From NCBI RefSeq assembly GCF_000143415.4, contig NW_003314397.1, positions 124,001 through 188,000 of the forward strand: 64,000 nt of DNA. The letters run 5' to 3'. A program made the translations under genes and the position numbers. Each line of letters starts with the position of its first letter. Within the stretch, counting starts at the first letter, position 1. Of this stretch, positions 1,958 through 61,952 are shown one piece after another. Source of the DNA: Selaginella moellendorffii. Lineage: Eukaryota > Plantae > Lycopodiophyta. The notes beneath the pieces were generated by a model. That model was not told where the DNA came from and made no database searches. It saw nothing but the letters and a program-made list of their open reading frames with translations.

Positions 1958-2401
1958 CTAGAACAAGGGAGATCTGTGAGGAGTTCCTTTGCGGTGGCTT
2001 CTGGGCGATGGAGAGGAGACAAGCACTAGGCTTTTACAAGGCGTGGGTGTGGGTGTGGCGGCCATCTCCGACGAGAGCACGGAGTTTGGAGAGGGTGGAA
2101 CTAGAGTTACTGGTGGGGGATGTTGGTGGCGAGTAGTAGTGGTGGTGGCGGTGGTGGTACTGGGCTCTCGATCTCTCACAACTATCTGGAGCTTGGTCTT
2201 CTTGAAGCCCAGTATCCGAGGAGGAAGAACTTCTTCGCCTGAGAAGATTGACGGTGGTGGTGGTGGTGGTGGCGGCATTCTTATTCTGGTGGTGGTGGTG
2301 GTGGTGATGGTCGCTCGTCGCCATGGATGGTGATGGAGCTGGATTGAGTTCTTCGCGGTCTTCCAGCGATCCAGTGGGGGATGACTTACCTGGAGAAGGC
2401 C
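1958..2401 (-). pseudogene. 5'-truncated PLATZ transcription factor fragment
   Basis: Same C-terminus (RSHRKGTPHRSPLF) as 9582-10490; zinc-binding N-terminal domain missing; internal indels. Confidence 0.85.
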
Positions 2402-2429
2402 CTTCAGCTGCAATGCTACTGCATTATGT

Positions 2430-3160
2430 CCCACACGAGCACTTGGAACACTTCCTGATGAACTATGAGGAGAATTCCAACGAAGCTCCGCTGCAAAAAT
2501 AAAAATAGAAATAAGCTTTCACAAAGAATTAACTCGAGCTTTTTTACTGCTCACCATCAAGAAAACCGGACGTCCATGAAGGGTGTTCTAGCTGCAGCAG
2601 CAATTATATTACGGTTCATCAGCGCCTTTTCTCGCTCCAAGCTTTTGATTATCTTTGTCATTTCGGCCTGCATAATTCCCGCGTCTTGAAGGTCCTGTTG
2701 TGAAAGAACTGAGCTTGCAAAACTCTAGCGTCTTTTAACACTGACTCCTTCCTGACGAGACAAACTCTGCCATTAAATCGAATGAAACCATGAACAGCTT
2801 CACTAACCTGAACTCTGCCATAAAAATCAACCATCGGTAGAACATACTCTTCAGCAGTGATCTCTCCAGCATAATATGAAGATGTTGTCTGTGAGATTTC
2901 TGCCTTTTGGACATTAAGAGCCAGGCTTTAAAGACCTCTGACCTGCAAAACAAGAAAAAAGTTGCCTCAATTCTCCGAACAAAATGAATGATAATTACCT
3001 CAGCTTGGCAGATTGTCGAAAACGGAAACGCAACAGCAAGCGATCTTCAGTCAACCGCACTTTCCAGCCACTGAACGCATTCTGATGAAGATCTAAACAC
3101 CGCGATTCCTGAGCTTCAGATCTCTAGTTGTTCCTTTTGCTCCTGCTGCTGCCGCTCATG
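2430..3160 (-). pseudogene. Spliced gene remnant of unknown function with FxxW repeats and a coiled-coil segment
   Basis: Exon-like segments NAFSGWK / EVFKAWL / LLKSMFYRWL and MQAEMTKIIKSLEREKALM separated by short GT-AG introns; no clear start; cut off at the duplication breakpoint. Confidence 0.3.
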
Positions 3161-3642
3161 TGTTCCTAACCAAACCCTAATTAAAAAATCAAATGAGAAT
3201 ATCTATTAGATATCAACTGCTATTGTACAAATTATGTGTAGTACCGACCATCCAACAACATTAACAACACTGATGCTAAGTGGTGGTAGAATTAAAAATG
3301 TTATATGACTTTGGTAAATCACCATAAATTATCATGGTAAATCACCATAAGATAAAAGGTGAAATCCCCGTGCGTTACACTAATTTCTAATACACAGGAT
3401 AGGTTCTTGTGTTCTCCTTCGCAACTTTACATTTTCTGCAATCGGAAAGCCTGCTTCTGGAGTAGAGCAGCAATCTGGCGGCGGATTTGACATTGTGACT
3501 GATCACAAACTCCTTGGACGCATAGCCGCAGTGAAATTCGAGCTGAGAAGCCGCCATAGCCATGCCCAGGGCTTTTTGTTCGTGTGTTCAGAATTCAATG
3601 GTTACAGTCAGATCAACGGTCAGATCTACACTAAGGACATAT

Positions 3643-4885
3643 CTACGCGGTGTCGTCGTCAACGCCCTCAGAGAAGTTGACACAGTCCTTGTGGTGAAAT
3701 ACTGCAACTTCACAATCTCGGTGTGAGCAGACAACCACAGCACCTTCATCCACTCCTTGCCGACATAGGCAGATATCTTCATTTGTTGCATTTTTAACAA
3801 TCGAAACATTAAAACCGCACGAAACACATACCACGAGATGGCGGTGCCTCTACCAAATTCAGTGAAACAATTTGTTGCTGTAGCTCGAAAAGGCTGAGCT
3901 CAAAATGAAAATCTTGATCAAGCCCTGCAATGTCAAGAAAAAAAAATTCAAATAAAAGCCAAAACATAGAAATATACCTGTCGGATATCCTCGCATAATT
4001 TTGTGCAAAGGAATTCTTTGCACAAAATCTTCTTGGTTCTCTTCATTACATACCCCAGGACTGAAGTTCACGTCGCGGAAACGACCGGTGCCATCTTGAT
4101 GATCGAGTATGAAAAGAAGAAACCGCTGGCTAAGCACCCCATTACCTGATCAAGTAACTCGTAAGAAAAAGAAAAAGAAGAAAAGTTGCCTTAACCAGCT
4201 CGCTTGATCTCCAGTTTGATGCCCAATGTGATGGCCACGCCGTTGCATGACCACCACCGCATCTCTTCCTTGAGCCGCGGGATCGATTCATTTCTATACG
4301 ACAGCTCAAGGACAAAGCTCGGAAGAGCATTTGGCGTTTGCGATGGCACCCATGCTGTAAAACATCGCAAACTGTTATACACAAACCACATATCCAAGAG
4401 AGTACAAGCATACCGACGTCAGGCTCCTTATTGATAACGTACTTGTCGACTTTGAGTGGTATTCTCGTAGATCCAATTCCAAGCAAAACATCTCGGCTTT
4501 TGAAGCTACCCCGATTGCCTTGCTCATACCATGCTGATACCATCTGCTCCTTCATCTCATGTACGCAGAGGGCAACAACCTCATGAACGCGTGAGGGATC
4601 GCCGTAAAGCCAAACGGACCCAAAATCCTTCCCCGCCTCCTTTACAAAGGAGAGTTTCCACCCGCTTTCGATTTCCAAGCTCCAGAGCTCAAACACACTC
4701 TCATACACTCTGGAAGCCACAAGATAAGGGCCTCGACATCGTCCTTTTGCAGCATCCTCTTCTAGCTCAGCTATTGCCTTATCTAAACCTATGTGCAGAT
4801 CCACAGGCCTGCACACGGTACTGGTAACATCCCCACACCGATAGAGACCACCCTCAATGACATCGCTGACACCACAACACGCCAT
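3643..4885 (-). CDS. Uma2/DUF820-like PD-(D/E)xK endonuclease with C-terminal PHD-like finger (exons 4885-4414, 4354-4196, 4145-3978, 3924-3832, 3776-3643)
   Basis: Removing short GT-AG introns in phase gives KEPDVAWVPSQTPNALPSFVLELSYRNES (Uma2 PDxxxV...PxxVxE motif) ... SLFELQQQI, then DICLCRQ...VVCSHRDCEVAVFHHKDCV; PHD end is interrupted by TAG codons; the last intron has a weak AAG acceptor. Confidence 0.7.
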
Positions 4886-5079
4886 TACCTGATAATACTA
4901 CCCTTAGCCTGTCCTGTGTATTTAGGGTAAACCGGTAAACCTTAAAAGCACAACGGTTGATGGGGTGGACTGCATGGTGGGCCATGGCAGGGGCGCGCCT
5001 GAGCACCGTCCGTTGACCGTTGACGAAGGTAGGACGAGAAGACCGGACAGTTGACCGCTGAACAGGCCGTTGAGGCAAT

Positions 5080-5720
5080 CCCTTACTGCCGAAGATCCTC
5101 TATCGAAACTACAACTCCTACAGCTAAATACTCTGCCGTGTTCCCAAGAAATGCTCGCCGCAAACAGCCGCCCCCTCGGTTGAATGCCGTGACCAGAGAA
5201 ATCGACCCACAAGGTGAAAACACGCAGAAACCCACCCCGAAAAAAGAAAAGAAAAAAGAAAAACAGAGGAACCCGGAAAAGGAAAATAACGAAAATAAAG
5301 GCACTGGAGCCTAGCTCAGAATCCGAGGCTCTGAAAAAAAATAAAAAAGCAACGTTCAAATCAAAACTCCAGAAATACATACCGATTGTGCTCGTTTTCC
5401 AAAGTAGTGCAGAAAGTTCCCAGGACAATGGACCACATCAGTTGCTCCTGCAATTTCAGCCCTCCTTATCGCCTCCTTGTCCTGAAATTCTTGACAGTCA
5501 GCCGAGATTTCTACAAGAGAAACGTAAGAAAGTCGTTTCGTCCGCCAGCCAGCCGTCGATGACAACACCAGTTGCAAAAATTTCAGAGAGCTTCCAACTG
5601 TGGGGCATAGGTGAAGGTTTCGCACTGTACTTGAAAATGATCATGATCGTACCTTCACAAGAGCAACAAACAACTCAGTAACTAAACTGGAGGAGTGAAG
5701 TATATATCCTACCTTCCTTC
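5080..5720 (-). other. Possible further spliced exons of unknown identity upstream of the Uma2-like gene
   Basis: ORF 5356-5625 is bounded by tacag| and |gtatgt; pyrimidine-rich minus-strand intron-like tracts nearby; no recognisable motif. Confidence 0.25.
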
Positions 5721-6419
5721 AATATCGCAATGATTAGAACCATGAAAGGTGAAAAAATCGAATTTCCATATCAAAGCCAGCAGCATAAGACCGAGTTTCA
5801 GAAAAACGCAAAGGTAAACACAAGAAACTGTTCCATAAATGAAAAATACTCACTGGTTGTGTTGGATACTGCATATATATATATGTATAGGAAAAAAAAA
5901 CGAGTCAAAGATATTACGATTACAAAACAGTTATGGTCCGTATTATTTTTATGTTAAGTCATCAGTTTTTTCGACATTTGAATGGCACTCAAATTGTACT
6001 AAGCTCAGAATTAGTGAGAGAGAGGCCAGTTGCCATTTAAGTCTCCAACCATTGGAAAATCTTTATTTGCAACTGGCAAATTTGTTATTTTGGTTGTCTG
6101 TATACATAAATTTACCATGCAATTTAAGCAACTGGCAAGTAGCATGCTCAGTTGTTTCTATTTGATGTTGCAGCAACGGTGGATTTTGTGAAGAGTGGTC
6201 GCCGTTTGCAATCGCTAGACGACGCTCCGAGTAAAAGAGCCTATGCTTCAAGAACCTGACGATGGAGAAAGCTTCAGTGGTTTAAAGCTGTCGATTCAAA
6301 AGCGGACTCTTCGAATCAAACAGCGTTTATGTGATCGATGATGAAATTCTGCTCAACTGAACTCCAGAGCTGCTGAGATATCATCCATCTCAGTTGCACA
6401 ATTCGCTTCCAAATTGATA

Positions 6420-7145
6420 AACAGCTTCAAGATGTATCTCAAGCAATATCTCCGTTGCTTCATCATTTATCAGTAGAACGATTAGACACAACTCCTACCA
6501 TTTATTGAGTTCTCGTACAACAACACAGTTCACGGTTCCATGCAACAAACATTTTTCTTCTTTCTCCAATACTACCATCCACGATGGACGTTTCATGAAT
6601 CCGTTTCTCTACTGGCCAATTTTTCTACCACAAACCGGTCAACTTAACTCCAACACATTCATCATGATCTCCAAGAACATTTCCTCGAGGCTCAGAAACG
6701 TCACAAACTCGCCTCGCCTCATGGCTCCTAAGTAAAAGGTTGGTGATTAAGTTTGGTTATTGCGGTGCAACATTCAAACTACTCGTCCATCTGGTAAATT
6801 CGACTATCAATGCCTCGGTTCCTTCCAAATCTCTGCTCGCATTCATGAAGTTGCATATCAACTGGATCTTCCTCCGAGTATGTGCCTCCATCCTGTCTTT
6901 CATGTTTCCCTGCTCGAACCATACGTCACCAATGATATTCCAAGTCGAGTCATCCCACCAGCTCCCGAAGTCCAGATTGATTGTCACCCCAGTATGAAGT
7001 TGCTGAGATCCTCGATTCTAAGATCCTTCGACATCGGATGTACTACCTCATCGACTGGGTTGGTTACTCTCCAAGAGATTGGACATGGGAACCCTCGCAA
7101 AGTATAGTAAATTCTTCAGGTAAATTTTCTGACTTCCACGGCCGT
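6420..7145 (+). mobile_element. Decayed Ty3/gypsy chromovirus fragment (integrase C-terminus, GPY/F motif, chromodomain)
   Basis: QYLRCF..EFSYNN, LGSFQI..AYQLDLP..HPVFHVSLLEPY, YEVAEILDSK..YYLIDWVGY..TWEP, all with frameshifts; homologous to 24399-25868. Confidence 0.9.
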
Positions 7146-7520
7146 GAACAAAGTCATGGGAACGTTGCAGGGTCACGAAATCCCAAAGGGCCAGGCCAAG
7201 ATCGAGCAGTTCATGGATTCCTCCCACGCAAAGATCACCAAGCTCGTCAAGGTACCGACACTCTCATTCTTGTAAATTCATCCTTGTTCTCTTTTTTGTG
7301 CAGGGATACTTGGACAAGTATGTGTCGTGATGTTTTGACAATGGTTGGAAGCCGGAAGATTGATTTCTCAACAGATTGTACTATGTAAGTCTATAAGTAT
7401 CAATAGCTAACATTTAAGGTACGCGCACTGGTTCTACTCTTCTGTGTTCTTCAATTTCTCTATGGTATTTCTTTCGATCTAACAAAAAAAATCGGTTTTT
7501 GATGAGCCAGCTCTAGGTGG

Positions 7521-9503
7521 TCACTCGAGCAAGATATTGGCCATGAGGATATAAGGTCCGGGGTTCTCGGGGTGTGCCTCAAACGCGCTCCACGCCGCTC
7601 GGAGACCACACTGGATATCACTGTGGATCCGAGCGCCGCCAAGCAGTGCTCCCCAGGTGGTATCATCGGGAAGATATGGCATGCTCTGGATAAGCTCCTC
7701 GGCCTGTGGGAGCTGCCCGGCTCGAGCCAGCAAATCCACCATGGAGCAGTAGATCTCAAAGTGTGGAGCTACGCATCGATCTTCCAGCATGTACAAGAAG
7801 CACTGGCGGCCTTCTTCGACGAGCCCGACGTGCCGGCAAGCGCTCAGGATGTTCACGCAGGTGGCCTCGTCGGGTGGAATTCCCAGGAGTTCCATCGGTT
7901 TGAGCAGCTCCAGCGCTACCTTGCCATGCCCGTTTCGAGCATACGCGGTCGCCATCTCGGCCCAGGGCTTGACGTCCGGGTGTGGGATCCTTGCGAGAAG
8001 ATCCCGGGCTTCGCCCAAATGCCCGCTCTGGGCAAATGCTGCCACCACCGCGGTCCAGGTGATCCAATTGCGCTCCGGCATGGATTGGAATGCGTGCTTC
8101 GCTTGGGCGACGAGGCCGCTCTGGGCGAATCCGGCTGCGATGCTCGTCCAGGAGATTACATTCCTCTGGGGCATCCGATCGAAGGCGGTGCTTGCCTCGT
8201 CAATCAGACCCGCCTGGGCGAAGCTCGAGATCATCGCGTTCCAGGAGATGAGGTTGGCCTGGGGCATGGAATCGAAGACGGCCTTGGCGGCGACGGCGTC
8301 TCCGACGAGCCCGTGCACGGTGATCATGGCGTTCCAGGAGATCACATCGAGCTGTGGCGCGCGAGAGATCGCGGCGGTGGCGTCGTCGACCTGGCGAGAT
8401 TGGGCGTAGACGGCGATGAGCGCGTTCCAGGAGACGATGTTGCGAGAGGGCATCGAGTGGAAGAAGGATTGGGCATCGTCGACGCGACCGCTCTGGGAGA
8501 AGACTGTGATCATCGCGTTCCAGGCGATGGAATCCCATTTGGGCATAAGCGAGAACATCTCGACCGCTCGATTCAAATCTCCCGCCGTCGCCAGGCCTTC
8601 GATCATGGCCGTCCAGGATACCACGCTCCTTTCCGCCGCGGAATCGAACATCGCCATCGCATCGTCCACGTGTCCCTCTTCCGCGAAACCACGAATCATG
8701 GCCGTCCACGACACCACATCGTGCTGGGGCATTCTCAAGAACACGCTGCGCGCCCTAGCCACATCCCCGCTCTCGGCATTCGCGACGACGATCACAGTCC
8801 AAGGGATCACATCGCGCTCGGGCATTCCATCGAAGATCCTCTTGGCCTCGCGAATCTCCCCGCGCTCGACGTTGGCTGTGATCATCACATTCCAGGAGAC
8901 GACGTCGTGCTGCGGCATCCGCCAGAACATCGCGCGCGCGTCGTCAAGATTTCCTCTCTTGGCGTAGCCAGCGACCATCGCGTTCCAGATAACGATGTTT
9001 TGCTGGGGAATCGAGTCGAATATCGCCCTGGCATCGTGGATCCGGCCGTGGCGAGTGTAGAGCGTGATCATCGTGGTTCCAAGGTACACATCCCACTGCG
9101 GCATGCTCTTCTTGATCTTCTTGGCCTCCGCCACATCCCCTCTCCGAGCATAGGCAGCCGCCAAGGAATTCCAGGTGACCGCATTGCGCTCGGCCATGGC
9201 ATCGAAGATCCGCCGCGCCTCCTCGACCTCGCCATTCTCGACATAGGCCTGGATCATCAGATTCCCGGAGAAGGAATTGGGGCAAGGGATGGAGTCGTGC
9301 ACGGATCGCGCGTCGCGGGGGCTGCGGCACTTGCCATACATCTCCACGAGCAGATTGGCGAGGTACAAGCTCTGGGCATGGATGCTGCTGCCGCGGATTC
9401 GAGCATGCAATCGCCGCCCGCCACACAGGTCGCGGTTCCTCCCGCATTCGCGGACGAGCTCGCCGAGATTCTTCTCCTCAACTCCAGCAGCATCGTCTCT
9501 CAT
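7521..9503 (-). CDS. PLS-class pentatricopeptide repeat protein (tandem 31-aa S/SS motifs + E domain, no DYW), 660 aa
   Basis: Repeated VSWNAMI..YA..G....A..F..MP motifs; E-domain YCSMVDLLARAG / TWGALLG / PGPYILMANI; single exon. Confidence 0.95.
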   Translation of the reverse strand: MRDDAAGVEEKNLGELVRECGRNRDLCGGRRLHARIRGSSIHAQSLYLANLLVEMYGKCRSPRDARSVHDSIPCPNSFSGNLMIQAYVENGEVEEARRIFDAMAERNAVTWNSLAAAYARRGDVAEAKKIKKSMPQWDVYLGTTMITLYTRHGRIHDARAIFDSIPQQNIVIWNAMVAGYAKRGNLDDARAMFWRMPQHDVVSWNVMITANVERGEIREAKRIFDGMPERDVIPWTVIVVANAESGDVARARSVFLRMPQHDVVSWTAMIRGFAEEGHVDDAMAMFDSAAERSVVSWTAMIEGLATAGDLNRAVEMFSLMPKWDSIAWNAMITVFSQSGRVDDAQSFFHSMPSRNIVSWNALIAVYAQSRQVDDATAAISRAPQLDVISWNAMITVHGLVGDAVAAKAVFDSMPQANLISWNAMISSFAQAGLIDEASTAFDRMPQRNVISWTSIAAGFAQSGLVAQAKHAFQSMPERNWITWTAVVAAFAQSGHLGEARDLLARIPHPDVKPWAEMATAYARNGHGKVALELLKPMELLGIPPDEATCVNILSACRHVGLVEEGRQCFLYMLEDRCVAPHFEIYCSMVDLLARAGQLPQAEELIQSMPYLPDDTTWGALLGGARIHSDIQCGLRAAWSAFEAHPENPGPYILMANILLE

Positions 9504-9581
9504 CGGCAGATGCCCGGCTATGGCATCGCATTCTCAACGCTAGAGGAAAGACAGTTAAATACATTCATCGACTCAGGCTAG

Positions 9582-10490
9582 CTAGAACAAGGGAGACCTG
9601 TGAGGAGTTCCTTTGCGGTGGCTTCTGGGCGATCGTGAGGAGACGAGCACTAGGCTTTTACAAGGCGTGGTTGTGGGTGTGGCGGCCATCTCCGACGAGA
9701 GCACGGAGTTTGGAGAGGGTGGAACTAGAGTCACTGGTGGGGGATGTTGGTGGCGAGTAGTAGTACTAGCAGCAGTGGTGGTGGCGGTGGTGGTGCTGGG
9801 TTCTCGATCTCTCACAACTATCTGGAGCTTGGTCTTCTTGAAGCCCAGTATCCGAGGAGGAAGAACTTCTTCGCCAATGCTTTGCTGCCGCCTCTTGAAG
9901 AGATTGACGGTGGTGGTGGTGGTGGTGGCGGCATTCTCATTCTGGTGGTGGTGGTGGTGGTGGTGATGGTCGCTCGTCGCCATGGATGATGATGGAGCTG
10001 TATTGAGTTCTTCGCGGTCTTCCAGCGATCCAGTGGGGGATGACTTACCTGGAGAAGGCCACGCGACGATGGCCGTGTCGTCATAGCTCGCCACCACGCA
10101 TGCAAGCTTACAAGAAATGGAGCAAAACCGGAGGGGATCCGAGATGCTTCTCCCGCACGTCTCGCAGCAGCGAAGCGATCCTTTGGCGAGCCTCGACTGT
10201 GGCCGGCTGAGGAGGAAGGCGATCTTGGCACCATTGATGGTGTAAGGCTGAATGCCCGTGGTGTCGAGCAGCTTGTGGAGGTCGTTGATACGCACAGCGT
10301 CCATGTGAGAAGCTCGCCTCACCTGGAGCGTGGTGTGCGAGAGATGATCCCGCAAGCCCGAGTGACAGAGCGGCCCCTCGCAGCAGTCGACACAGAAGTG
10401 GTTTCTCTCATTCTTGCTCGAGACATGGCTGCGGCAATGAGCGAAGTAGTTGCCTGCCAGGAACGCCTCCAACCAGCCCGGGACCGCCAT
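9582..10490 (-). CDS. PLATZ: PLATZ transcription factor, 302 aa, intronless
   Basis: WL..FL...YF..C..H...KNERNHFCVDC..LC; LQVRR; IQPYTINGAKIAFL; CETCGRS...RFCSISCK; C-terminal RKGTPHRSP. Confidence 0.93.
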   Translation of the reverse strand: MAVPGWLEAFLAGNYFAHCRSHVSSKNERNHFCVDCCEGPLCHSGLRDHLSHTTLQVRRASHMDAVRINDLHKLLDTTGIQPYTINGAKIAFLLSRPQSRLAKGSLRCCETCGRSISDPLRFCSISCKLACVVASYDDTAIVAWPSPGKSSPTGSLEDREELNTAPSSSMATSDHHHHHHHHQNENAATTTTTTVNLFKRRQQSIGEEVLPPRILGFKKTKLQIVVRDREPSTTTATTTAASTTTRHQHPPPVTLVPPSPNSVLSSEMAATPTTTPCKSLVLVSSRSPRSHRKGTPHRSPLF

Positions 10491-24387: not shown

Positions 24388-24402
24388 GCACCCCCTCCTC
24401 AA
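24388..24402 (-). promoter_or_regulatory. Polypurine tract
   Basis: Minus strand TTGAGGAGGGGGTGC immediately before the 3' LTR. Confidence 0.85.
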
Positions 24403-25868
24403 GAACGAGTGGAACGAGGATGTGAACGAGAACGAAGAGGAGGATGAGATGAGCGGCGAGGGATGGGAGATGGAGAAAAAGAATGAGGACTGGGACGAGA
24501 AGGATAGCGGCGGTGGAAGTCCTGAACAAGGTCAGGAGAATGAATCAGGTTGTCCGCAGGTTCCCAAGTGCGTTCCTCAGGTCCATAACCCTTCCAGTCC
24601 ACCAGATAGTAGAGTTTAGACCGTGAAATCTTGGAATCAAGGATGTCCTGAACCTCGTACTCAGACCCATCCTCGAGCTGCATTGGTGGAGGCGGAGGAA
24701 TGACCCGATTTGGAATAGGACTGGGAATATAAGGCTCAAGGAGAGAGGAGTGAAAAATGGGGTGAATTTGATATGAGGAGGGAAGTGCAAGGTGATAAGT
24801 GACAGGATTAATGATGGCAGTGATAGGGAAAGGACCAAGGCGTTTGAAATCGAGTTTTGAACAGGGCCTGGTGATGGAGATATTTCGCTTGAGGAGCCAG
24901 ACTTTATCCCCGATATTGTAAGGGGGACAATCTTGACGATGGACATTGGCAAATGTTTTATGAGATTCTTGAGCACGATGGAGGTGGACGGAGATGGAGT
25001 TGTGGATTTCTTGGAGGTTGGAGATAAATGCCTCAGAGCGGGGATTTGAACGAGAGGATTCAGATGGAGAAGGAAGTGAGAGATTGAATCGGGGATTTCG
25101 GCTAGAGTTCGCAAAGAAGGGGGAAACTCGAAAAGAGGAGTGAACAGAGTTGTTATAAGAGAACTCAGCAAGGGGAAGGATATCGAACCAGTTATCCTGA
25201 TGATAGTTGATGAAGCACCTCAAGAATTGTTCCAACGTCTGAATCGTTCGCTCGGATTGCCCATCAGTTTGAGGATGATATGCCAAAGAGAGGTTGGCCT
25301 TCACTCCAAGCAGCTGCAAAAACCGTTGCCAGAAATGAGAGATGAACTGAGGCCCCCGATCTAAAACCACATCTGTAGGAATCCCATGAAGTCGGAAAAT
25401 TTCCCTGAATACCAGTTTTGCCATGTCCTCGCCCGAAAACTCCTTGGTACATGGCAAGAAGTGCGCCATCTTTGTGAAGCGATCCACCACGACTAAAATG
25501 TCGTTGAAGCCTCCAGAACTCGGAAGATCACTCAAGAAATCCATGGAGATGGATTCCCAAGGACCTGAAGGGACTGGAAGGGAACGAAGCAAACCTGAAG
25601 GAAGGTGGCGAGGTACCTTATTCCGGGCACAAGTGTCACAGGAGGTAACAAAAGCTTTGATGTAGTCGTCCATGTGAGGCCACCAAAAGTCCCGTGCAAC
25701 TAGCTCATAGGTTTTCGCAATGCCGAAGTGACCAGCAGTCGGGCTATCGTGGCACGCCATCAGGACCAACCTTCGAGCATCACCTTCAGGAACGTAAAGC
25801 TGCTCCCCACGGTACAATAAGCCATCTAAGAACTCGAACTCGTCAAATCGCCGGCAGTCGGGAGTCAC
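24399..25868 (-). CDS. Integrase (HHCC, DDE) + chromodomain, separated from RT-RH by a frameshift
   Basis: HD...GHFG..CDTC; SMDF, DRGPQF, GQSER; GPF; YEVQDILDSK..YYLVDWKGY. Confidence 0.9.
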   Translation of the reverse strand: MTPDCRRFDEFEFLDGLLYRGEQLYVPEGDARRLVLMACHDSPTAGHFGIAKTYELVARDFWWPHMDDYIKAFVTSCDTCARNKVPRHLPSGLLRSLPVPSGPWESISMDFLSDLPSSGGFNDILVVVDRFTKMAHFLPCTKEFSGEDMAKLVFREIFRLHGIPTDVVLDRGPQFISHFWQRFLQLLGVKANLSLAYHPQTDGQSERTIQTLEQFLRCFINYHQDNWFDILPLAEFSYNNSVHSSFRVSPFFANSSRNPRFNLSLPSPSESSRSNPRSEAFISNLQEIHNSISVHLHRAQESHKTFANVHRQDCPPYNIGDKVWLLKRNISITRPCSKLDFKRLGPFPITAIINPVTYHLALPSSYQIHPIFHSSLLEPYIPSPIPNRVIPPPPPMQLEDGSEYEVQDILDSKISRSKLYYLVDWKGYGPEERTWEPADNLIHSPDLVQDFHRRYPSRPSPHSFSPSPIPRRSSHPPLRSRSHPRSTRS

Positions 25869-28156
25869 TGGGTGTCCAGCCTGAAGATGGGGAAAATGTC
25901 GCTAGCGAGATCATCGGATTGAAGATCGTTTCTGATTGCATCCATCAAGGAGGAGTCCTGAGGGGCCAGGGAAATTGCCATAACTTGAAGCCGATCAGGA
26001 CCGAGGATAACTTGATCCTGTTGATCGAAGGCAGGATTACCAGGCCTGAGACTGAGATAGGAGCGCCTTGAAAGAGCATCAGGAAGGCCTTGAAACTTTC
26101 CAGGTCTGTACTTGATAACAAAGTCAAACCGACTCAGGAATTGTGCCCACCTTGCTTGACGATGGCTTAAAACTCGGGAAGTGGCAAAGTACTCGAGATT
26201 TTTGTGATCCGTCCAGACTGTTGTTTGATGGCTCGCCCCCTCCAAGAAACGGCGCCACTCTCCAAAGGAATCCACGATGGCAAGGAGCTCATTGTCGTGG
26301 ATTTCGTAATTGATCTCCGCAGGTTGGAATTTCCGAGAATGGAAAGCGACCGGATGAAGTTTGTGATCCGCTCCGAGTTGAGACAGCACAACACCAATGG
26401 CAAAGTCGGAGGCGTCAGCCTCGATGAAGAAAGGTTGTGAGGAATCAGCATGGATCAAGACAGGAGCAGAACTGAAGGCCGCCTTGAGTGTGTCGAAGGC
26501 CTGCTGGGCAGCAGCAGACCAAGAGAAGGGAACATCCTTGCGAGTGAAATATGTGAGAGGAAGGACAATGTCAGAGTAGTGATCAATGAATTTGCGGTAG
26601 AAGTTGGCGAAGCCGAGGAAAACCTGAACGTCCGACATTGATTGTGGAAGCTCCCATTCGAGAATAGTCTTGACTTTGGCAGGATCCATCGTGATACCTT
26701 CAGGAGTGACAATGTACCCAAGGAACTCCACAGACTGTTGATCAAAGGAACATTTCTCAAGCTTCGCGTATAGGCCGTGTTCTCGCAGCTTCGCTAGCAC
26801 CTTGCATACATGTTCGTCATGCTCCTCCTGAGTTTTTGAGTAGATGAGGATGTCATCGAGGTAGACGATCACCATCTGATCAAGAAACTCCCGAAAGACG
26901 TCATTCGCCATGTGTTGGAAAACTGCTGAAGCATTTGTCAAGCCAAATGGCATGACAGTGTACTCGAAGTGGCCATAGCGGGTTCGGAACGCAGTCTTCC
27001 ATTCATCACCAGGCCAGATCCGGATCAGGTTGTATGCTCCACGGAGGTCGATCTTGGTGAAGAAGCGGGCACCGCCGAGGCGTTCCAACAGGTCCGAGAT
27101 CAGGGGAAGCGGATAACGGTTCCGAACAGTCACCTTGTTCAAACCTCGGTAGTCGATGACTAGCCGCAAGCTCCCATCCTTCTTCTTGACAAAGAAGACA
27201 GGCGCTCCAGCTGGGGACTGCGAATGCTGAATGTAGCCCGAGGCAAGGTTCTCATCCACGTACTCTTTGAGGGCCTTAAGCTCGAACGGGGATAACCTGT
27301 AGATAGGCCCCCACGGAGGTGACGCTCCTTCCTGTAAATCAATGGGACAATCATAAGGCCGATGAACAGGCAGTACACTAGCTTTTTTCTTGTCAAACAC
27401 ATCCCCAAAATCATGATACTTCTCAGGAAGATTGACAGGAGAAACATGCAAAGCAAAAAGAAAAAGAGGTTCTTTATGAAGGAGTTCTTTCATAGTGATT
27501 GTGGAGATAGGAGGAGGCGTACGACTAAATGGAATGATGAGACGAGGATACGGTCCAGTGTAAGATGGAAGAGAGGAAAAAGAAGAGGGTGAAAACTTTC
27601 TAGAGTTAGGAACAAAACCCCGATTTGAGTTTAGGGAACTTTTCCTGATTCGGACTCGATGAACAGCAGGGGAAGCCGTGGGAGAGATGAGCTGTAATTC
27701 CTTCCAATAGATCTGAGGCTGATGTAGTTGGAACCAAGGAAGACCGAGCACCACAGAGGAGGACTTGCTGTTGATGATGTTGAAGGCGATATCGGTGACG
27801 GTGGACCCGATGTGTACTCGAATGGGCAACATTTCCCTAAGTCCAGAAGATGGAGACACAAAATGCCCGCCGATGCCTTCAACCCTCAAATCCCGTATGG
27901 TAGGAGAAAGAGGAACGTGATGTCGGGCAGCAAAGTCCGTGTCCATGAAGCAGGAAGTTGCACCCGAGTCCAATAACGCCAGAGCCTTGAGTCCTGATTG
28001 TCCGGTGAAAGAAAGGAGACATGGGACGCGGAAGTTGCGGGAATTGGTGGTGGCTTTGATGAAAGGTGGTGAGGAGCTTGATAAAGAAGAAAAGTGATTT
28101 TTATTCAGGGAGTCCAAACAGACAGCTCCTACTCTGTTTGGACAGGGTCGTTTCCC
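25865..28156 (-). CDS. pol: Pol: aspartic protease, reverse transcriptase, RNase H (expressed by -1 frameshift from gag)
   Basis: LLDSGAT; YLDDILIYS; EADASDFAIG, ELLAIV, TDHKNL, DALSR. Confidence 0.93.
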   Translation of the reverse strand, partial: GKRPCPNRVGAVCLDSLNKNHFSSLSSSSPPFIKATTNSRNFRVPCLLSFTGQSGLKALALLDSGATSCFMDTDFAARHHVPLSPTIRDLRVEGIGGHFVSPSSGLREMLPIRVHIGSTVTDIAFNIINSKSSSVVLGLPWFQLHQPQIYWKELQLISPTASPAVHRVRIRKSSLNSNRGFVPNSRKFSPSSFSSLPSYTGPYPRLIIPFSRTPPPISTITMKELLHKEPLFLFALHVSPVNLPEKYHDFGDVFDKKKASVLPVHRPYDCPIDLQEGASPPWGPIYRLSPFELKALKEYVDENLASGYIQHSQSPAGAPVFFVKKKDGSLRLVIDYRGLNKVTVRNRYPLPLISDLLERLGGARFFTKIDLRGAYNLIRIWPGDEWKTAFRTRYGHFEYTVMPFGLTNASAVFQHMANDVFREFLDQMVIVYLDDILIYSKTQEEHDEHVCKVLAKLREHGLYAKLEKCSFDQQSVEFLGYIVTPEGITMDPAKVKTILEWELPQSMSDVQVFLGFANFYRKFIDHYSDIVLPLTYFTRKDVPFSWSAAAQQAFDTLKAAFSSAPVLIHADSSQPFFIEADASDFAIGVVLSQLGADHKLHPVAFHSRKFQPAEINYEIHDNELLAIVDSFGEWRRFLEGASHQTTVWTDHKNLEYFATSRVLSHRQARWAQFLSRFDFVIKYRPGKFQGLPDALSRRSYLSLRPGNPAFDQQDQVILGPDRLQVMAISLAPQDSSLMDAIRNDLQSDDLASDIFPIFRLDTQ
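28112..28156 (-). promoter_or_regulatory. -1 programmed ribosomal frameshift signal
   Basis: G GGA AAC heptamer in gag phase, 6-nt spacer, perfect 11-bp stem GTCCAAACAGA/TCTGTTTGGAC; pol lies in the -1 frame. Confidence 0.85.
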
Positions 28157-29151
28157 GACTGCAATAGAGGTGGACTTTGAGGCAGAGTGAACTCGAGCAG
28201 TTGAGGAGGCTTCTTGGGACATACAGCTGCTTTGTGCTTAGGATCAGCACAATAGAGGCAAAGATTATGAGATATTTGACGTTGCTTCTCAGCAGGACTC
28301 AACTTCCCTCTAATGAGTCGGGGAGTACCAGAAATATCCATCGGAACCGGAGCAGTAGGTTCAGGAGTATGCCCCAAAGACTCAAGCTGGGATTCCTGAG
28401 TCTGGGACGGAAAAACAGCGGCGCGGCGACTTTCCTGACGACGTTCAAAGAGACGATTGTCACATCGAACAGCTTTGTTGATGGCATCCGACAGGTCCTT
28501 GGGATCCTCCATGGTGAGCAACAAATCCTTGACACCGTTGTTGAGGCCGAAACGAAATTGGTCAATCAGGGCCTGCTCATCCCACTGAGTGTCCAAAGCA
28601 AGGAGTTGGAACTCTGCAGTGTAGATCGAGGCAGGACGAGACCCCTGAGAGAGACGTCTCATCTTTGTGGTAGTAGCCTGAACCCGATCCGTCTCGCCAA
28701 AACATGCTTCGAGCTTCTCTTTGAACAATTGAAGATCCATCAGCTCTGGAACCACGACCCCTTTCATGCTCTTCTCCAGAAGAGGAGAAAACCATGACAA
28801 AGCTGCACCTTCGAGCAACATCCCAATCGCGCCGATTTGAGATTCAAGAGTAGGGTACCGCCGATGTTGAAGTGCGAAGATCAACTCCATCTGGTTCAGG
28901 AATCCGCGAAGCTCCGAACGCTTGCCTGAAAATTTCGCCAGGAAGCTCACCTTCGGTTCAGGAACTTTGCTGGATCCTTGAGCCGAAAGTGAAGCAAGCT
29001 CCTGCTGCATGCGAAGAAGGGTTGCCTTCAGCTCGGTATTCTCAGACTGGATTTTTGCAAGGACTTCAGCAAAGAAATCAGGATGGCTTAGAGACTCCAT
29101 TGGCAAGAAGAAAGAAAAAAGGGGGAAAAAAAGGCAAAGGTAATCAAACAA
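28129..29151 (-). CDS. gag: Gag (retrotransposon capsid + CCHC zinc knuckle); true start probably MESLSH at ~29100
   Basis: FSGKRSELRGFL, LSQGSRPASIYTAEF, PMDI, CLYCADPKHKAAVCP. Confidence 0.9.
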   Translation of the reverse strand: MFDYLCLFFPLFSFFLPMESLSHPDFFAEVLAKIQSENTELKATLLRMQQELASLSAQGSSKVPEPKVSFLAKFSGKRSELRGFLNQMELIFALQHRRYPTLESQIGAIGMLLEGAALSWFSPLLEKSMKGVVVPELMDLQLFKEKLEACFGETDRVQATTTKMRRLSQGSRPASIYTAEFQLLALDTQWDEQALIDQFRFGLNNGVKDLLLTMEDPKDLSDAINKAVRCDNRLFERRQESRRAAVFPSQTQESQLESLGHTPEPTAPVPMDISGTPRLIRGKLSPAEKQRQISHNLCLYCADPKHKAAVCPKKPPQLLEFTLPQSPPLLQSGNDPVQTE

Positions 29152-56110: not shown

Positions 56111-59028
56111 GAAGAGATTTGAGACGCGAGATTCATCCGCAAGATGCTCCAACATTCTGGGACTCCCAACAGCCAAGGAATGCGTGAGGCGACAAAAGAA
56201 CTTCAAACAAGATGTCCCACCTGCTAATTGTCCACGGTTGTCGCTAATAATAAAATCTGAAGAGCTTGGTGGTGATGATTTTGGCCATGGATTTCCAGAC
56301 TTGACGCTGCAAACTTGCTGTGGCGATGGGCCGTCCCATATCTCCCAACGCTCCTGGAAAAGAGAAGCCTCCAAATAACAACCTCCTGTAGCTGGTTGCT
56401 GCTGGCAAACTTTTCTCTCGTCTTCGCAGCTTCTTCTCCAGCTGCCGAATCGAACAAGGCCTCCCAGCCTTGCTCCCATTCCAGGCTTGACGCATCACAC
56501 AAATCTAGCTTATCCATTCCATCTGTGGGAAATCATCCGACAGCGGCTTCACAATCGCGGACGAACGCTCCAGGCTTGATACTTTGGCCTTGCTGGAGAT
56601 GGAAGGCACTGATAGATGCCAACCTTGGAGGCTACGGCCATTTCCTATGATCGATGAGGCAGAAGAAAAGTTGTTCGGCACTGCTAGAGCTCCAAGTGAG
56701 ACTCGAAAAGAGCCTTTGATGATCCAATCGTAGAGAAACTCGTGCTTGCACTCGTAGTCAGTGACCAACACCCCTCGATCAAGCGGAAAAAAATGTGCCA
56801 GGCCTTGCAAGCCATGAGAAAAACCTTCGGCCTCGACAACGTTGGTCTCTGGAAGTGAAGAGCCTTGCCTTTGAAAAGCGTGACTGTCGCGGGGCCCGTG
56901 AAGGAAGACGTAGTTCTTGGTTGTAGCTTAGTTCTTGATTGGTATCAGGGAGAATTCACCTCCGTTTCTGGCGCTCGCTCTGCCTTTATGTTGCATGGAT
57001 CATAGAGCAAGAACCTTGGAGCTTCTTGCTGTGATGTCCGCGGGAATGAAAACGATCTACTGCATTTCGATCGCCCTCTTAGAAGACGATTCTAAGATTC
57101 TGCGATTTAAGGTTAGGGCGCCTCGAGCAAGAACCCTAAATTCTAATCCTTATGGAGGCCAAAAAGGCGAGCGCTTGCACCACCATTGACAGCCTGCCAG
57201 ACGCTGTTCTAGCGCTCATCCTCGACATCATAAAGTACAACGTCATGTACCTTTTGGTAAGCAAGAGGTGGCACAGAATTGGCAAAGAGCTTGGTCTCGT
57301 AATAATCGATCTGCATGACTTGCATGAGGATAAGCCACCGGAGGGCAGGGTTTTCAAGCTGGTGCAGCAATCCATCCGACAGCTCCTCATTCACAAATAC
57401 CATTACTTCTTACACAAGAACTACTCATGGATCACAAGCATTGCCACCACTCTAGAGGAGCTCACCATTGAAGGTGTGAAGCACCAGGACAGTACCTTTG
57501 ATCTAGAGCTGGTCTCCAAGGCGTGTCCCAAGCTCAAGTTTGTCAGCTTTTACAGGCTTCACATTGTGGCCAGGGGCGAGGAGTTCAAGTACCAACAAAA
57601 GGCTCCGTTAAGCCTTACATTTCCGGCTCTCACCCATTGCAGCTTAGATAGGGTGATTGGTCTAGACCTCGCAACAGAGCTTCTGCCTTCGTGTCCAGTG
57701 CTGGAAGAGCTCTCGTTATGCGTGTATCACTCCCCCGGCGCCCTATCATCGTCAAGCTTGAGAGTGTTAAGCCTTGAAACAATAGACGGTAGCGGCATTC
57801 TCGAATTGGATCTTCCCAATCTAGAGACTGCGTGGATCGGTGACTGCGAGAAGCTCAAGATGAGAGCTCCACGTCTAAAGAGCCTCTCGCTTGGCAATTG
57901 TGGGAAGCTTGTGGGGAAGATGGCAGTGCCCGGGGAGCTTGAGATTGTATGTAACGCGTTGGAGACTCTGACGTTGAGATTGGGTGCGTTCGAGACAACG
58001 ATTGCCTCTGTGGAGAAGATTCATTTCAAAACTGTGACGTTGAACTGCATATCACTCTTTGACCGATCTTGTCCTCATGACGTGGCATGGAAGGTGTTCG
58101 TGTTGGAACAGTTTAAAGAGTGCCAGGAGTTGAGCCTCCTTGACTGTTTTGAAACATATTGTGAATGTGGCAGGGGTTTTCCAAGTACGATTCAAGAACT
58201 TCCGAGGCTAAGGAAGGTTTGTTTAGACGCGTCCCGGGGGGGACCTTTACAATTTCGTGTCTTGCTTGATAAGTTTGTGCAATGCTGCCCAGCTTTGCAA
58301 AGTATCGTCTTGTTTGGGAGAGAGGGCAAGCTTAGTGAGCTCCAACAGCTAGCAGCTTGTGTGGCCAACATTCCGGTTACCATTTTGCCCAGAAACTAAA
58401 ATTACTAGATGAAATAGAAACATTTTGAAGCTTTATCATTTCTCTGCCAATGCGTGCCTGATGATGCTCTGTGGAAGCGCAGCGAGAAGGAGGCAAAAGA
58501 TACTCCTGACCATCAGCCGCTACATTTCACAGCGCTGTAGCAGCTCCGAGACTGATTTTCACGGCATCTCGAGGCTGGAAGAAGTGGTGAGCATCATTAG
58601 AGAATGTGGAAATTCCAGGGATATAGGCAAGGGAAGAAAGAGCCACGAGTTTATCTTGCAATCGGGAGGAGAGCATAACAAGTTCGTGGCTAACCTGCTC
58701 ATAGAAATGTATGGAAAATTTGCAGTATTTGCAGGAAAGTTTGCAGTATTTAACGGGATTCCTTATCCCCACAAGTATTCCTGGAAGATTTTGCTGCAGC
58801 TATACATAGACAATGGTTTGCTCCACTCGGCAGAGCAAACATTTAGGAATATGCCAGTCGCGATTCGAGATTCGGATGCCATTGCCTGGAATGCTATGAT
58901 GTCTGCATTTGCCCTGCACGGGCATCTTCTGGTTGCCTTAGATTTGTTCCACGCCATGCCGCATCGGACGGTCGTGTCATGGAACGCCATCATCGCCGCG
59001 CTCATCCAGGCCGCCCGTTTTGAAGCCG
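55511..59028. repeat. 3.5-kb tandem duplication, unit 1
   Basis: Near-identical to 59025-62553; junction microhomology gccg. Confidence 0.95.
57152..58399 (+). CDS. F-box/LRR(RNI)-like protein, 415 aa
   Basis: IDSLPDAVLALIL..LVSKRW F-box; CPKLKFVSF, CPVLEELSL, LPNLETAWI, APRLKSLSL, CPALQSIVL repeats. Confidence 0.85.
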   Translation: MEAKKASACTTIDSLPDAVLALILDIIKYNVMYLLVSKRWHRIGKELGLVIIDLHDLHEDKPPEGRVFKLVQQSIRQLLIHKYHYFLHKNYSWITSIATTLEELTIEGVKHQDSTFDLELVSKACPKLKFVSFYRLHIVARGEEFKYQQKAPLSLTFPALTHCSLDRVIGLDLATELLPSCPVLEELSLCVYHSPGALSSSSLRVLSLETIDGSGILELDLPNLETAWIGDCEKLKMRAPRLKSLSLGNCGKLVGKMAVPGELEIVCNALETLTLRLGAFETTIASVEKIHFKTVTLNCISLFDRSCPHDVAWKVFVLEQFKECQELSLLDCFETYCECGRGFPSTIQELPRLRKVCLDASRGGPLQFRVLLDKFVQCCPALQSIVLFGREGKLSELQQLAACVANIPVTILPRN

Positions 59029-60668: not shown

Positions 60669-61952
60669 ATGGCAAGCGCTTGCACCACCATTGACAGCCT
60701 GCCAGACGCTGTTCTAGCGCTCATCCTCGACAAGGTAACTTTCATAAAGTACAACGTCATGTACCTTTTGGTAAGCAAGAGGTGGCACAGAATTGGCAAA
60801 GAGCTTGGTCTCGTAATAATCGATCTTCATGACTTGTATGAGGATAAGCCACCACCAGTGGGCAGGGTTTTCAAGCTGGCGCAGCAATCCATCCGACAGC
60901 TCCTCATTCACGAATACCATTACTTCTTACACAAGAACTACTCATGGATCACAAGCATTGCCACCACTCTAGAGGAGCTCACCATTGAAGGTGTGGAGTA
61001 CCTGAACAGTTTTGACTTTGATCTAGAGCTGGTCTCCAAGGCGTGTCCCAAGCTGAAGTTTGTCAGCTTTTACAGGCTTCACATTAAGGCCAGGGGCGAG
61101 GAGTTGAAGCTTAAGGCTCCGTTACGCCTTACGTTTCCGGCTCTCACGCATTGCAGCTTAAACAGGGTGACTGGTCTAGACCTCGCAACAGAGCTTCTGC
61201 CTTCGTGTCCGGTGCTGGAAGAGCTCTCGGCATTCGTGTATTACTTCCCCGGCTCCCTATCATCGTCAAGCTTGAGAGTGTTAAACTTTGAAACAAAATA
61301 CTGTAACAGCACTGTCGAGTTGGATCTTCCCAATCTAGAGACTGCGTGGATCGGTGACTGCGAGAAGCTCAAGATGAGAGCTCCACGTCTAAAGAGCCTC
61401 TCGCTTGGCAATTGTGGGAAGCTTGTGGAGAAGATGGCAGTGCCCGGGGAGCTTGAGATTATATGTAATGCGTTGGAGAGTCTGAAGTTGAGATTGGGTG
61501 CGTTCGAGACAACAATTGCCTCTGTGGAGAAGATTCATTTCAAAACTGTGACGTTGAACTGCAGATCATCCTTTGACCGATCTTGTCCTCATGACGTGGC
61601 ATGGAAGGTGTTCGTGTTGGAACAGTTTAAAGAGTGCCAGGAGTTGAGCCTCCTTGACTGTTTTGAAACATATTGTGAATGTGGCAGGGGTTTTCCAAGT
61701 ACGATTCAAGAACTTCCGAGGCTAAGGAGGGTTTGTTTAGACGCGTCCCAGGGCGGACCTTTACAATTTCGTGTCTTGCTTGATAAGTTTGTGCAATGCT
61801 GCCCAGCTTTGCAAAGTATCGTCTTGTTTGGGAGAGAGGGCGACCTTAGTGAGCTCCAACAGCTAGCAGCTTGTGTGGCCAACATTCCGGTTACCATTTT
61901 GCCATTTTGCCCAGAAACTAAAGCTTCAAAATGTTTTCAATATTTATTCTAG
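60669..61952 (+). CDS. F-box/LRR(RNI)-like protein, 427 aa (paralog of 57152-58399)
   Basis: Same motifs as the first copy; intact ORF. Confidence 0.85.
   Translation: MASACTTIDSLPDAVLALILDKVTFIKYNVMYLLVSKRWHRIGKELGLVIIDLHDLYEDKPPPVGRVFKLAQQSIRQLLIHEYHYFLHKNYSWITSIATTLEELTIEGVEYLNSFDFDLELVSKACPKLKFVSFYRLHIKARGEELKLKAPLRLTFPALTHCSLNRVTGLDLATELLPSCPVLEELSAFVYYFPGSLSSSSLRVLNFETKYCNSTVELDLPNLETAWIGDCEKLKMRAPRLKSLSLGNCGKLVEKMAVPGELEIICNALESLKLRLGAFETTIASVEKIHFKTVTLNCRSSFDRSCPHDVAWKVFVLEQFKECQELSLLDCFETYCECGRGFPSTIQELPRLRRVCLDASQGGPLQFRVLLDKFVQCCPALQSIVLFGREGDLSELQQLAACVANIPVTILPFCPETKASKCFQYLF

Follow-up and report, generated by a model that had tools for sequence, protein, structure and literature searches.

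A transcribed gene of predicted Uma2 fold in Selaginella moellendorffii and the broken PHD finger of its two reference copies

The gene, its sister copy and its transcripts

The window analyzed here is a stretch of 64,000 nucleotides from the spikemoss Selaginella moellendorffii (NCBI RefSeq assembly GCF_000143415.4, contig NW_003314397.1, positions 124,001 to 188,000 of the forward strand), and all positions are counted from its first letter. Close to its beginning, on the minus strand, lies a five-exon gene (4885..3643, with the ATG at 4885) whose product is predicted to consist of a nuclease-like domain of the Uma2/DUF820 type followed by the first part of a PHD finger. The explanation that we consider probable for the whole is that of a transcribed Uma2-fold gene, encoding a putative nuclease, which descends from an ancestral fusion to a PHD finger, the finger now being broken in both reference copies. 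Removal of the four introns leaves a single open frame of 341 codons. Every intron is in phase 1, is bounded by GT..AG, and is short (50-59 nt; 59, 50, 53, and 55 nt in order), and the introns are AT-rich, with 25-37% GC as compared to 44-54% GC in the exons.

A protein search matched the product to the NCBI ‘uncharacterized protein LOC112342307’ (P0001), an S. moellendorffii protein of 302 aa that is 99% identical and whose gene model has introns 1-3 identical to those of the window gene. P0001 originates from scaffold GL377670.1 (locus L001), which is colinear with the window over >11 kb at 94-99% identity, and the two therefore represent one locus, either as two haplotypes or as copies from a very recent duplication. 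By this comparison of sequences, the window gene is best described as an allele or very recent duplicate of LOC112342307, and L001 is referred to below as the sister copy.

Transcript evidence comes from contigs of four public runs (X1, X5, X9, and X10), belonging to four studies, that were placed on positions 3300-5300. The joint 4354|4414 is found in three runs (X1, X5, and X10), the joint 4145|4196 in X5, with the loose end of the X10 contig running on into exon 2, and the joint 3924|3978 in two runs (X1 and X5), while a joint from the end of exon 4 (3832) to the PHD exon is found in three (X1, X5, and X9). The skipped segments read CT..AC on the plus strand, which identifies the minus strand as the source of the RNA. 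With its reach from 5131 to 3481, the longest contig corresponds to an mRNA of ~1.5 kb. Intron 2 is kept in the X1 contig, and this isoform would end early as a 247-aa ORF (4142..4885) without the C-terminal half of the domain. An initial annotation of the window, made from its letters alone, had proposed four short introns that splice in phase, and the spliced contigs confirm introns 1-3 exactly as well as the donor of intron 4. The acceptor of intron 4 has to be revised, since the annotation drew the junction as 3831-3777, and in the transcripts exon 4 is followed by CAAATGAAG starting at 3785, a join 9 nt upstream of the acceptor first drawn. The acceptor TCTGCAG, directly before the join at 3785, is present in L001, and the window gene lacks all seven of its bases. 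Only one in-frame AG, at 3778-3777, is left there as an acceptor, and no transcript contig of the four runs shows it in use.

The features of the gene are collected in Table 1. Within the 5′ untranslated region (UTR), an upstream ORF on the minus strand (4854..5078, with ATGs near 4985 and 4976) extends over the main start codon in a different frame, and the two alleles differ there by an 18-nt indel and several small indels.

Table 1. Coordinates of the Uma2-like gene and its parts in the window
Feature	Coordinates	Strand	Description
5′ UTR	4886..5131	-	to the reach of the longest transcript contig (X1, then adaptor sequence)
Exon 1	4414..4885	-	N-terminal subdomain, GDPSxxHE motif (D96, H101), KEPD (K153, D156)
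Intron 1	4355..4413	-	59 nt, phase 1, GT..AG; skipped in contigs of 3 runs
Exon 2	4196..4354	-	core strand with E174, N179-E180-S181, helix ending in W192
Intron 2	4146..4195	-	50 nt, phase 1
Exon 3	3978..4145	-	C-terminal beta-strands of the Uma2-like domain
Intron 3	3925..3977	-	53 nt, phase 1; skipped in X1, X5
Exon 4	3832..3924	-	last domain helix and linker ending ..APPSR; donor at 3831 used in X1, X5, X9
Intron 4 as initially drawn	3777..3831	-	donor seen in transcripts; acceptor AG 3778-3777 seen in none
PHD-finger exon	3646..3785	-	zinc ligands 1-6 (C-x-C, C-x4-C, H, C); PF00628 profile positions 1-32 of 47
First premature TAG	3643..3645	-	TGG (Trp of W-x-C-x2-C) in the sister copy and all transcripts
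Finger-end remnant	3616..3642	-	reads I-C-P-stop-C-R-S-D-R-stop
Second TAG	~3630-3632	-	TAT in the sister copy; L001 reading ends AWICPYCRSDR
3′ UTR	3481..3615	-	to the reach of the X1 and X5 transcript contigs, ending at 3481

The window as a whole is plant nuclear DNA, the neighboring genes being PPR, PLATZ, U-box/ARM, and glycosyltransferase genes together with a Ty3/gypsy element. A tandem segmental duplication (1-2434 and 7521-10490), each part with a PPR gene and a PLATZ-type zinc-finger gene, brackets the Uma2-like gene, and L001 is arranged alike. An isolated chromodomain-like ORF (6981-7388, plus strand) resembles the C-terminus of a chromovirus integrase and looks like a retrotransposon remnant between the Uma2-like gene and the duplicated PPR gene. 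Farther away, a Ty3/gypsy-type retrotransposon on the minus strand (24399-29151) has long ORFs for gag, for protease-RT-RNase H, and for an integrase ending in a chromodomain. Lastly, a tandem pair of closely similar intronless ORFs on the plus strand (57152-58399 and 60669-61952; 415 and 427 aa), leucine-rich-repeat-like and each followed by similar flanking ORFs, looks like a local duplication.

Predicted fold and putative active site of the Uma2-like domain

The body of the protein was modeled with AlphaFold (AF2) from the family alignment (pLDDT 84.8, pTM 0.82) and compared with known structures. With VIA-align, the best match is TT1808 (1wdj_A; Z 15.1, rmsd 2.5 Å, 172 of 186 residues), followed by Ava_3926 (3ot2_B; Z 13.8, 167 of 179 residues), 9y1l (Z 11.3), and 3ijm (Z 9.0), and the next matches are other PD-(D/E)xK nucleases at Z 6.5 and lower. 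Foldseek returns the same top matches (E 8e-6, probability 1.00). Structure matches in the ESM Atlas include a bacterial cluster in which every member is PF05685 (100%; TM 0.75 by target) and fungal clusters (TM 0.62-0.66), and the language-model neighbors are fungal, among them a Mucoromycota cluster with 23% PF05685. In the model, then, ~300 residues are predicted to adopt the fold of Uma2/DUF820 proteins (COG4636, TT1808-like), which belong to the PD-(D/E)xK nuclease superfamily. The restriction-endonuclease fold named at the outset is upheld by these matches to TT1808 and Ava_3926 and by the conservation of the PD...EXX carboxylates and the histidine. The family has been listed as bacterial in a 2012 survey of PD-(D/E)XK proteins (PMC3424549), and its bacterial members are described there and in an earlier study as uncharacterized, predicted nucleases (Feder & Bujnicki 2005, PMC551604; PMC3424549).

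Sequence profiles do not find this family. A Pfam search with P0001 gave no match even at E<=10, the single exons matched no nuclease family, and PF05685 matched 0 of 29 family members (Pfam, E<=1). An NCBIfam search gave no match either, nor did a family profile run against the PDB sequences at E<=10. The initial annotation's pairing of PF05685 with PF00628 is accordingly not reproduced at this level, there being no match to the former and scores below the cut-off for the latter. No Uma2 gene is annotated in 50 kb of the Nostoc plasmid pCC7120alpha.

The active site of COG4636 proteins consists of a conserved His, the Asp of ‘PD’, and the Glu of ‘EXX’ with a hydrophobic residue at the usual place of the Lys, which has migrated to the next helix (Feder & Bujnicki 2005, PMC551604); some COG4636 lineages are also without this helix Lys (PMC551604). 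In the family of the window protein, D96 and H101 of the GDPSxxHE motif are found in 26 of 26 sequences. K153 of KEPD is present in 29 of 29 and D156 in 28 of 29. E174 of the xVxEVAY strand, E180 of the N179-E180-S181 stretch that follows it, and W192 are each present in all 29 (29/29). The window protein keeps H101, K153, D156, E174, E180, and the other conserved residues, and its five differences from P0001 fall elsewhere. At the canonical (D/E)xK position, the Lys is replaced by Ser/Ala. The invariant K153, directly before PD, is a candidate replacement for the helix Lys. The Uma2 fold and its carboxylate and histidine logic are thus present in a family that the Pfam sequence model does not reach, and the arrangement of the lysine is a further variant. 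The domain would be a Mg2+-dependent phosphodiesterase in which D156 and E174 bind the metal, while H101, E180, and the invariant K153 would complete a variant active site.

These same residues bear on the possibility that the protein is a catalytically inactive member of the restriction fold, serving as a binder of DNA or RNA or as an adaptor. Such a role would fit the Ser/Ala at the canonical Lys position and the lack of conservation of the migrated helix Lys, and non-catalytic PD-(D/E)xK folds exist, for example the N-terminal domain of RPB5 (cited in PMC551604). However, plant and fungal members alike strictly retain the two carboxylates that hardly vary in COG4636, the His, and the additional invariant Lys and Glu, which is hard to explain without a catalytic or metal site, and we regard an inactive protein as unlikely.

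The PHD finger and its fate

In the window, the last exon encodes C-x-C, 11 residues, C-x4-C, five residues, H-(H)-x2-C, 14 residues, and then TAG. At that codon L001 has TGG and reads on as W-I-C-P-Y-C-R-S-D-R-stop, the window having TAG for TGG and, further on, TAG for TAT. The window allele hence encodes zinc ligands 1-6, with ligands 7-8, the last Cys-x2-Cys pair, lying beyond two stops. L001 is without the 16 nt coding for the first C-x-C, and its frame shifts to a stop straight after the splice junction; it is because of this loss and frameshift that the NCBI protein P0001 ends ...ANEDI. Placed side by side, the window (ligands 1-6) and L001 (ligands 3-8) make up a complete C4HC3 pattern with ING-like spacing, and the full pattern appears only in this combined reading. 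In that sense the initial annotation recognized the last exon correctly as a PHD-type finger, but the full CxC..C....C....FH..C finger that it drew at this locus does not stand, given the two TAGs, the lost acceptor, and the frameshift in the sister copy. Against PF00628, with a Pfam threshold of 24 bits, the window piece covers positions 1-32 of 47 (E 0.068, 13.7 bits) and the L001 piece positions 10-47 (E 0.0012, 19.3 bits, below threshold). The window finger is disabled by the loss of the used acceptor together with the two TAGs that remove the last zinc pair, and the finger of the sister copy is disabled independently by the 16-nt frameshift. The methyl-lysine cage of ING fingers is formed by a Tyr before C-x-C and a Trp before F-H, and at these positions the window finger has Ile and Val (I-C-L-C and V-F-H).

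The transcripts add to this series of alleles. Their letters at the diagnostic positions 3631, 3644, and 3650 are all of the sister-allele (L001) type (on the plus strand, 3644 T>C in X1, X5, and X9, and 3631 C>A), and the 16-nt deletion of L001 is present in transcripts of X1 and X5. Run X9 contains a 76-nt contig in which exon 4 continues into 3785..3725 and the 16-nt deletion is absent, its length being exactly that of an allele-specific bubble branch for 31-mers. The adjoining X9 contig (3754..3566) has TGG and TAT in place of both stops, as well as a 3-nt CAC deletion that changes F-H-H-K to F-H-K. The two contigs are unlinked, and if both come from one allele, they hint at a third, in-frame Uma2-PHD allele in some plants.

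The fusion recurs elsewhere in the genome. At the locus of the paralog P0007 (L003), a 162-codon ORF on the minus strand encodes, without a break, the final ~80 residues of a Uma2-like domain and then an intact C4HC3 finger. Its Uma2-like part can be aligned with residues 234-299 of P0001, and the finger is 37% identical to that of the window gene as read from L001. The nearest Atlas clusters of this finger are all PHD (score 0.90, 173-176 shared features), and against PF00628 it scores 11.7 bits, below the 24-bit threshold. A third copy at L003 (copy iii) has a Uma2-like body and then an intron-split finger, Y-C-S-C ... G-W-Y-H-L-D-C, in the cage-bearing form; it is degenerate, with Lys at the places of E174 and E180, an in-frame stop, and Tyr for one zinc ligand. 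Within 4-6 kb of the paralog loci P0002, P0003, P0012, P0014, and P0024 there is no PHD-like sequence, and P0002 and P0003 are intronless. The initial annotation had called for a paralog with both domains in one ORF, and L003 supplies this case. The Uma2-PHD fusion is thus real as an ancestral design that is older than the window locus. The scaffold of L003 (GL377743.1) holds three family copies within ~4 kb, at 3854-4342 (-), 4594-5397 (+), and 6768-8100 (-). One of the three is an intronless Uma2-like ORF (part of P0007), another is the 162-aa fusion ORF, and another is the degenerate copy with the ING-like finger. This cluster sits between two gene models that both match DNA_pol_E_B (DNA-polymerase-alpha-subunit-B-like).

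The two parts of the window gene differ in what separates the copies. Across exons 1-4 (892 nt), window and L001 differ by seven substitutions (five nonsynonymous and two synonymous) and 0 indels, as against 24 substitutions and nine indels in the other ~935 aligned nt. The PHD exon alone shows one 16-nt indel, two nonsense changes, and one missense change. Since the nuclease exons have no frame-breaking change beside indel-rich flanks, the nuclease ORF looks maintained and the finger does not, as far as the two sequences tell. This pattern bears on the reading in which the entire gene is a decaying pseudogene, with the PHD lesions merely the first to be visible and the Uma2 part without function. 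Consistent with decay are the independent disabling lesions in both copies, the 5:2 ratio of nonsynonymous to synonymous changes, the retention of intron 2 in one run, and the clearly degenerate copy iii at L003 (E174 and E180 to Lys, in-frame stop). Decay of the whole gene is nevertheless improbable in our judgment, as the 892-nt ORF is free of indels in both copies next to nine indels in the adjoining non-coding DNA, all invariant residues are kept, and several independent studies contain correctly spliced transcripts of the gene.

Origin, interpretation and comparison with known systems

Among 1.84 billion representatives, an exhaustive HMMER search picked out 36 relatives. These include several S. 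moellendorffii paralogs, the ferns Adiantum capillus-veneris and A. nelumboides, and the basidiomycete fungi Parajaminaea, Armillaria, and Sympodiomycopsis, along with further environmental or assembly proteins. No seed-plant protein is among the 36, in agreement with the initial annotation, which did not recognize the architecture from seed plants and named ferns and fungi among the places in which to look for relatives. A word-indexed protein search with the family alignment has P0001 and one fungal protein among the matches listed, and the same kind of search with the L003 fusion ORF gave no matches. The gene belongs to a eukaryotic branch of Uma2 that is invisible to Pfam and is found in lycophytes, ferns, and fungi. 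Two older JGI models of S. moellendorffii contain the domain within long proteins, P0009 (ubiquitin, Uma2-like, SMP, and C2; 773 aa) and P0013 (1242 aa, with the Uma2-like domain at the C-terminus), and these may be merged gene models rather than real fusions.

A maximum-likelihood (ML) tree of 35 members comprises several old lineages, among them a clade of Selaginella and Adiantum with 100/99 support, which favors vertical inheritance among vascular plants. The tree does not resolve its deepest branches, and the long branch of P0001 is weakly attached to basidiomycete sequences that have long branches themselves, so that neither a donor nor a direction of transfer can be named. A horizontal origin followed by proliferation is possible. 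COG4636 genes proliferate and move horizontally in cyanobacteria (PMC551604), and for an arbuscular mycorrhizal fungus, Uma2 genes are reported to have been acquired from bacteria (table in PMC8227670).

Both precedents would suit a selfish or mobile-element-derived nuclease family, possibly acquired horizontally from fungi or bacteria, in which the PHD finger aided the targeting of insertion or cleavage; so would the many, mostly intronless Selaginella paralogs, the three copies clustered at L003, and the patchy distribution with no seed-plant match. The surroundings of the gene speak otherwise. No inverted repeats were found around it in 2300-7600, the direct repeats there are of chance size only, and no transposase adjoins it, its neighbors being PPR and PLATZ genes. 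The earlier suggestion of a transposon-derived element accordingly finds no terminal repeats or flanking transposase to rely on, the Selaginella-Adiantum clade (100/99) argues for vertical descent, and the tree resolves no donor. A selfish origin is, on balance, doubtful.

The least likely reading is that of a working chromatin-mark-guided endonuclease at the window locus as it stands, in which the Uma2 nuclease would be directed to marked nucleosomes by a functional PHD finger. In its favor, the fusion is of ancestral origin and is seen again at L003, the mature mRNA includes the PHD exon, and the contigs of X9 point to an allele that is free of the 16-nt deletion and has TGG and TAT for the stops. 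Against it, the window finger is without zinc ligands 7 and 8 and a normal acceptor, the sister allele is frameshifted before the finger, the cage positions, which are Tyr and Trp in ING fingers, are Ile and Val, and both PHD scores fall under the Pfam cut-off. The chromatin-mark-targeted endonuclease of the initial annotation is thus not the product of this allele, and the idea concerns, as an inference, an ancestral or intact form only.

The explanation that we prefer remains a transcribed Uma2-fold gene for a putative nuclease, with an ancestral PHD fusion whose finger is broken in both reference copies. Several observations weigh against it. Uma2 is matched by no Pfam, NCBIfam, or PDB sequence search, and membership in the family rests on predicted structure and motif logic. 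The helix Lys of the COG4636 ‘PD-EXX-K’ arrangement is not conserved in the family, there being no conserved Lys in the helix 182-194. The ratio of five nonsynonymous to two synonymous changes is compatible with neutrality and is uninformative. An AF2 model of the finger alone, made from a three-sequence alignment, reaches a pLDDT of 42 and gives no confident PHD fold. Finally, the window's own allele letters occur in no transcript contig of the four runs, such contigs dropping minor variants. With these points taken into account, we still hold the preferred explanation to be the probable one. The PHD finger would have anchored the nuclease to histone H3 tails in an intact ancestor, and would perhaps still do so in a third living allele. 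For the reference genotype, both copies would yield, if their products act at all, a stand-alone Uma2-like protein, with the finger exon drifting and the nuclease exons under constraint.

A more far-reaching proposal would be a lycophyte family of histone-reader-guided PD-(D/E)xK nucleases, in which an ING-like PHD finger binds H3 tails and an intact allele of the window gene is segregating, with cutting directed by chromatin state for transposon defense or programmed breaks, and with descent from a bacterial or fungal Uma2 lineage that proliferated in this genome. We give this proposal little probability. What the locus offers is a transcribed eukaryotic Uma2 branch in spikemosses, ferns, and fungi that standard domain databases miss and that keeps catalytic-type residues, and in Selaginella this branch has repeatedly become joined to a histone-reading finger. 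If true, the tethering of a nuclease to histone tails would offer a simple way to direct DNA cleavage by chromatin. The series of alleles (one possibly intact, one with acceptor loss and nonsense changes, and one with a frameshift) would constitute a natural experiment on the contribution of the finger. For the window locus itself, both reference copies have a broken finger, and the architecture, striking as it is, therefore belongs largely to the past.

Among known systems, SLX1, a GIY-YIG nuclease with a C-terminal PHD/RING-type finger, is built in a like order, with the nuclease first and a cross-brace zinc finger at the C-terminus. The likeness is no more than an analogy, as the nuclease folds are unrelated (GIY-YIG versus PD-(D/E)xK), and the match of PF21202 (SLX1_C) to the finger exon is not significant (E 0.076). 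With ING-type and other C-x-C PHD fingers (PF00628), the likeness lies in the pattern and spacing of C-x-C ... C-x4-C ... x5-H-x2/3-C ... W-x-C-x2-C when both alleles are read together; the window finger differs in being cut after ligand 6, in having Ile and Val at the cage positions, and in its sub-threshold scores. The Uma2 genes of arbuscular mycorrhizal fungi (PMC8227670) are likewise eukaryotic and Uma2-type, and the Mucoromycota Atlas cluster (23% PF05685) is among the nearest neighbors of the spikemoss protein. In contrast, some of the fungal genes are still recognized by Pfam, no PHD fusion is reported for them, and the tree leaves their relationship to the plant genes unresolved. The closest comparison is with bacterial Uma2/DUF820/COG4636 proteins (TT1808, 1wdj; Ava_3926, 3ot2; 9y1l; 3ijm), whose domain is matched in fold over almost its full length. 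Shared as well are the H...PD...EXX residue logic, in which the classical Lys site is taken by a hydrophobic or small residue (PMC551604), and the tendency to expand into many paralogs. Compared to these, the spikemoss protein is eukaryotic and encoded by an intron-containing gene, is ~110 residues longer through insertions and an N-terminal extension, and belongs to a family that the Pfam model does not detect (0/29) and in which the helix Lys is not conserved and an invariant Lys stands directly before PD (KEPD), and its gene is fused to a PHD finger.

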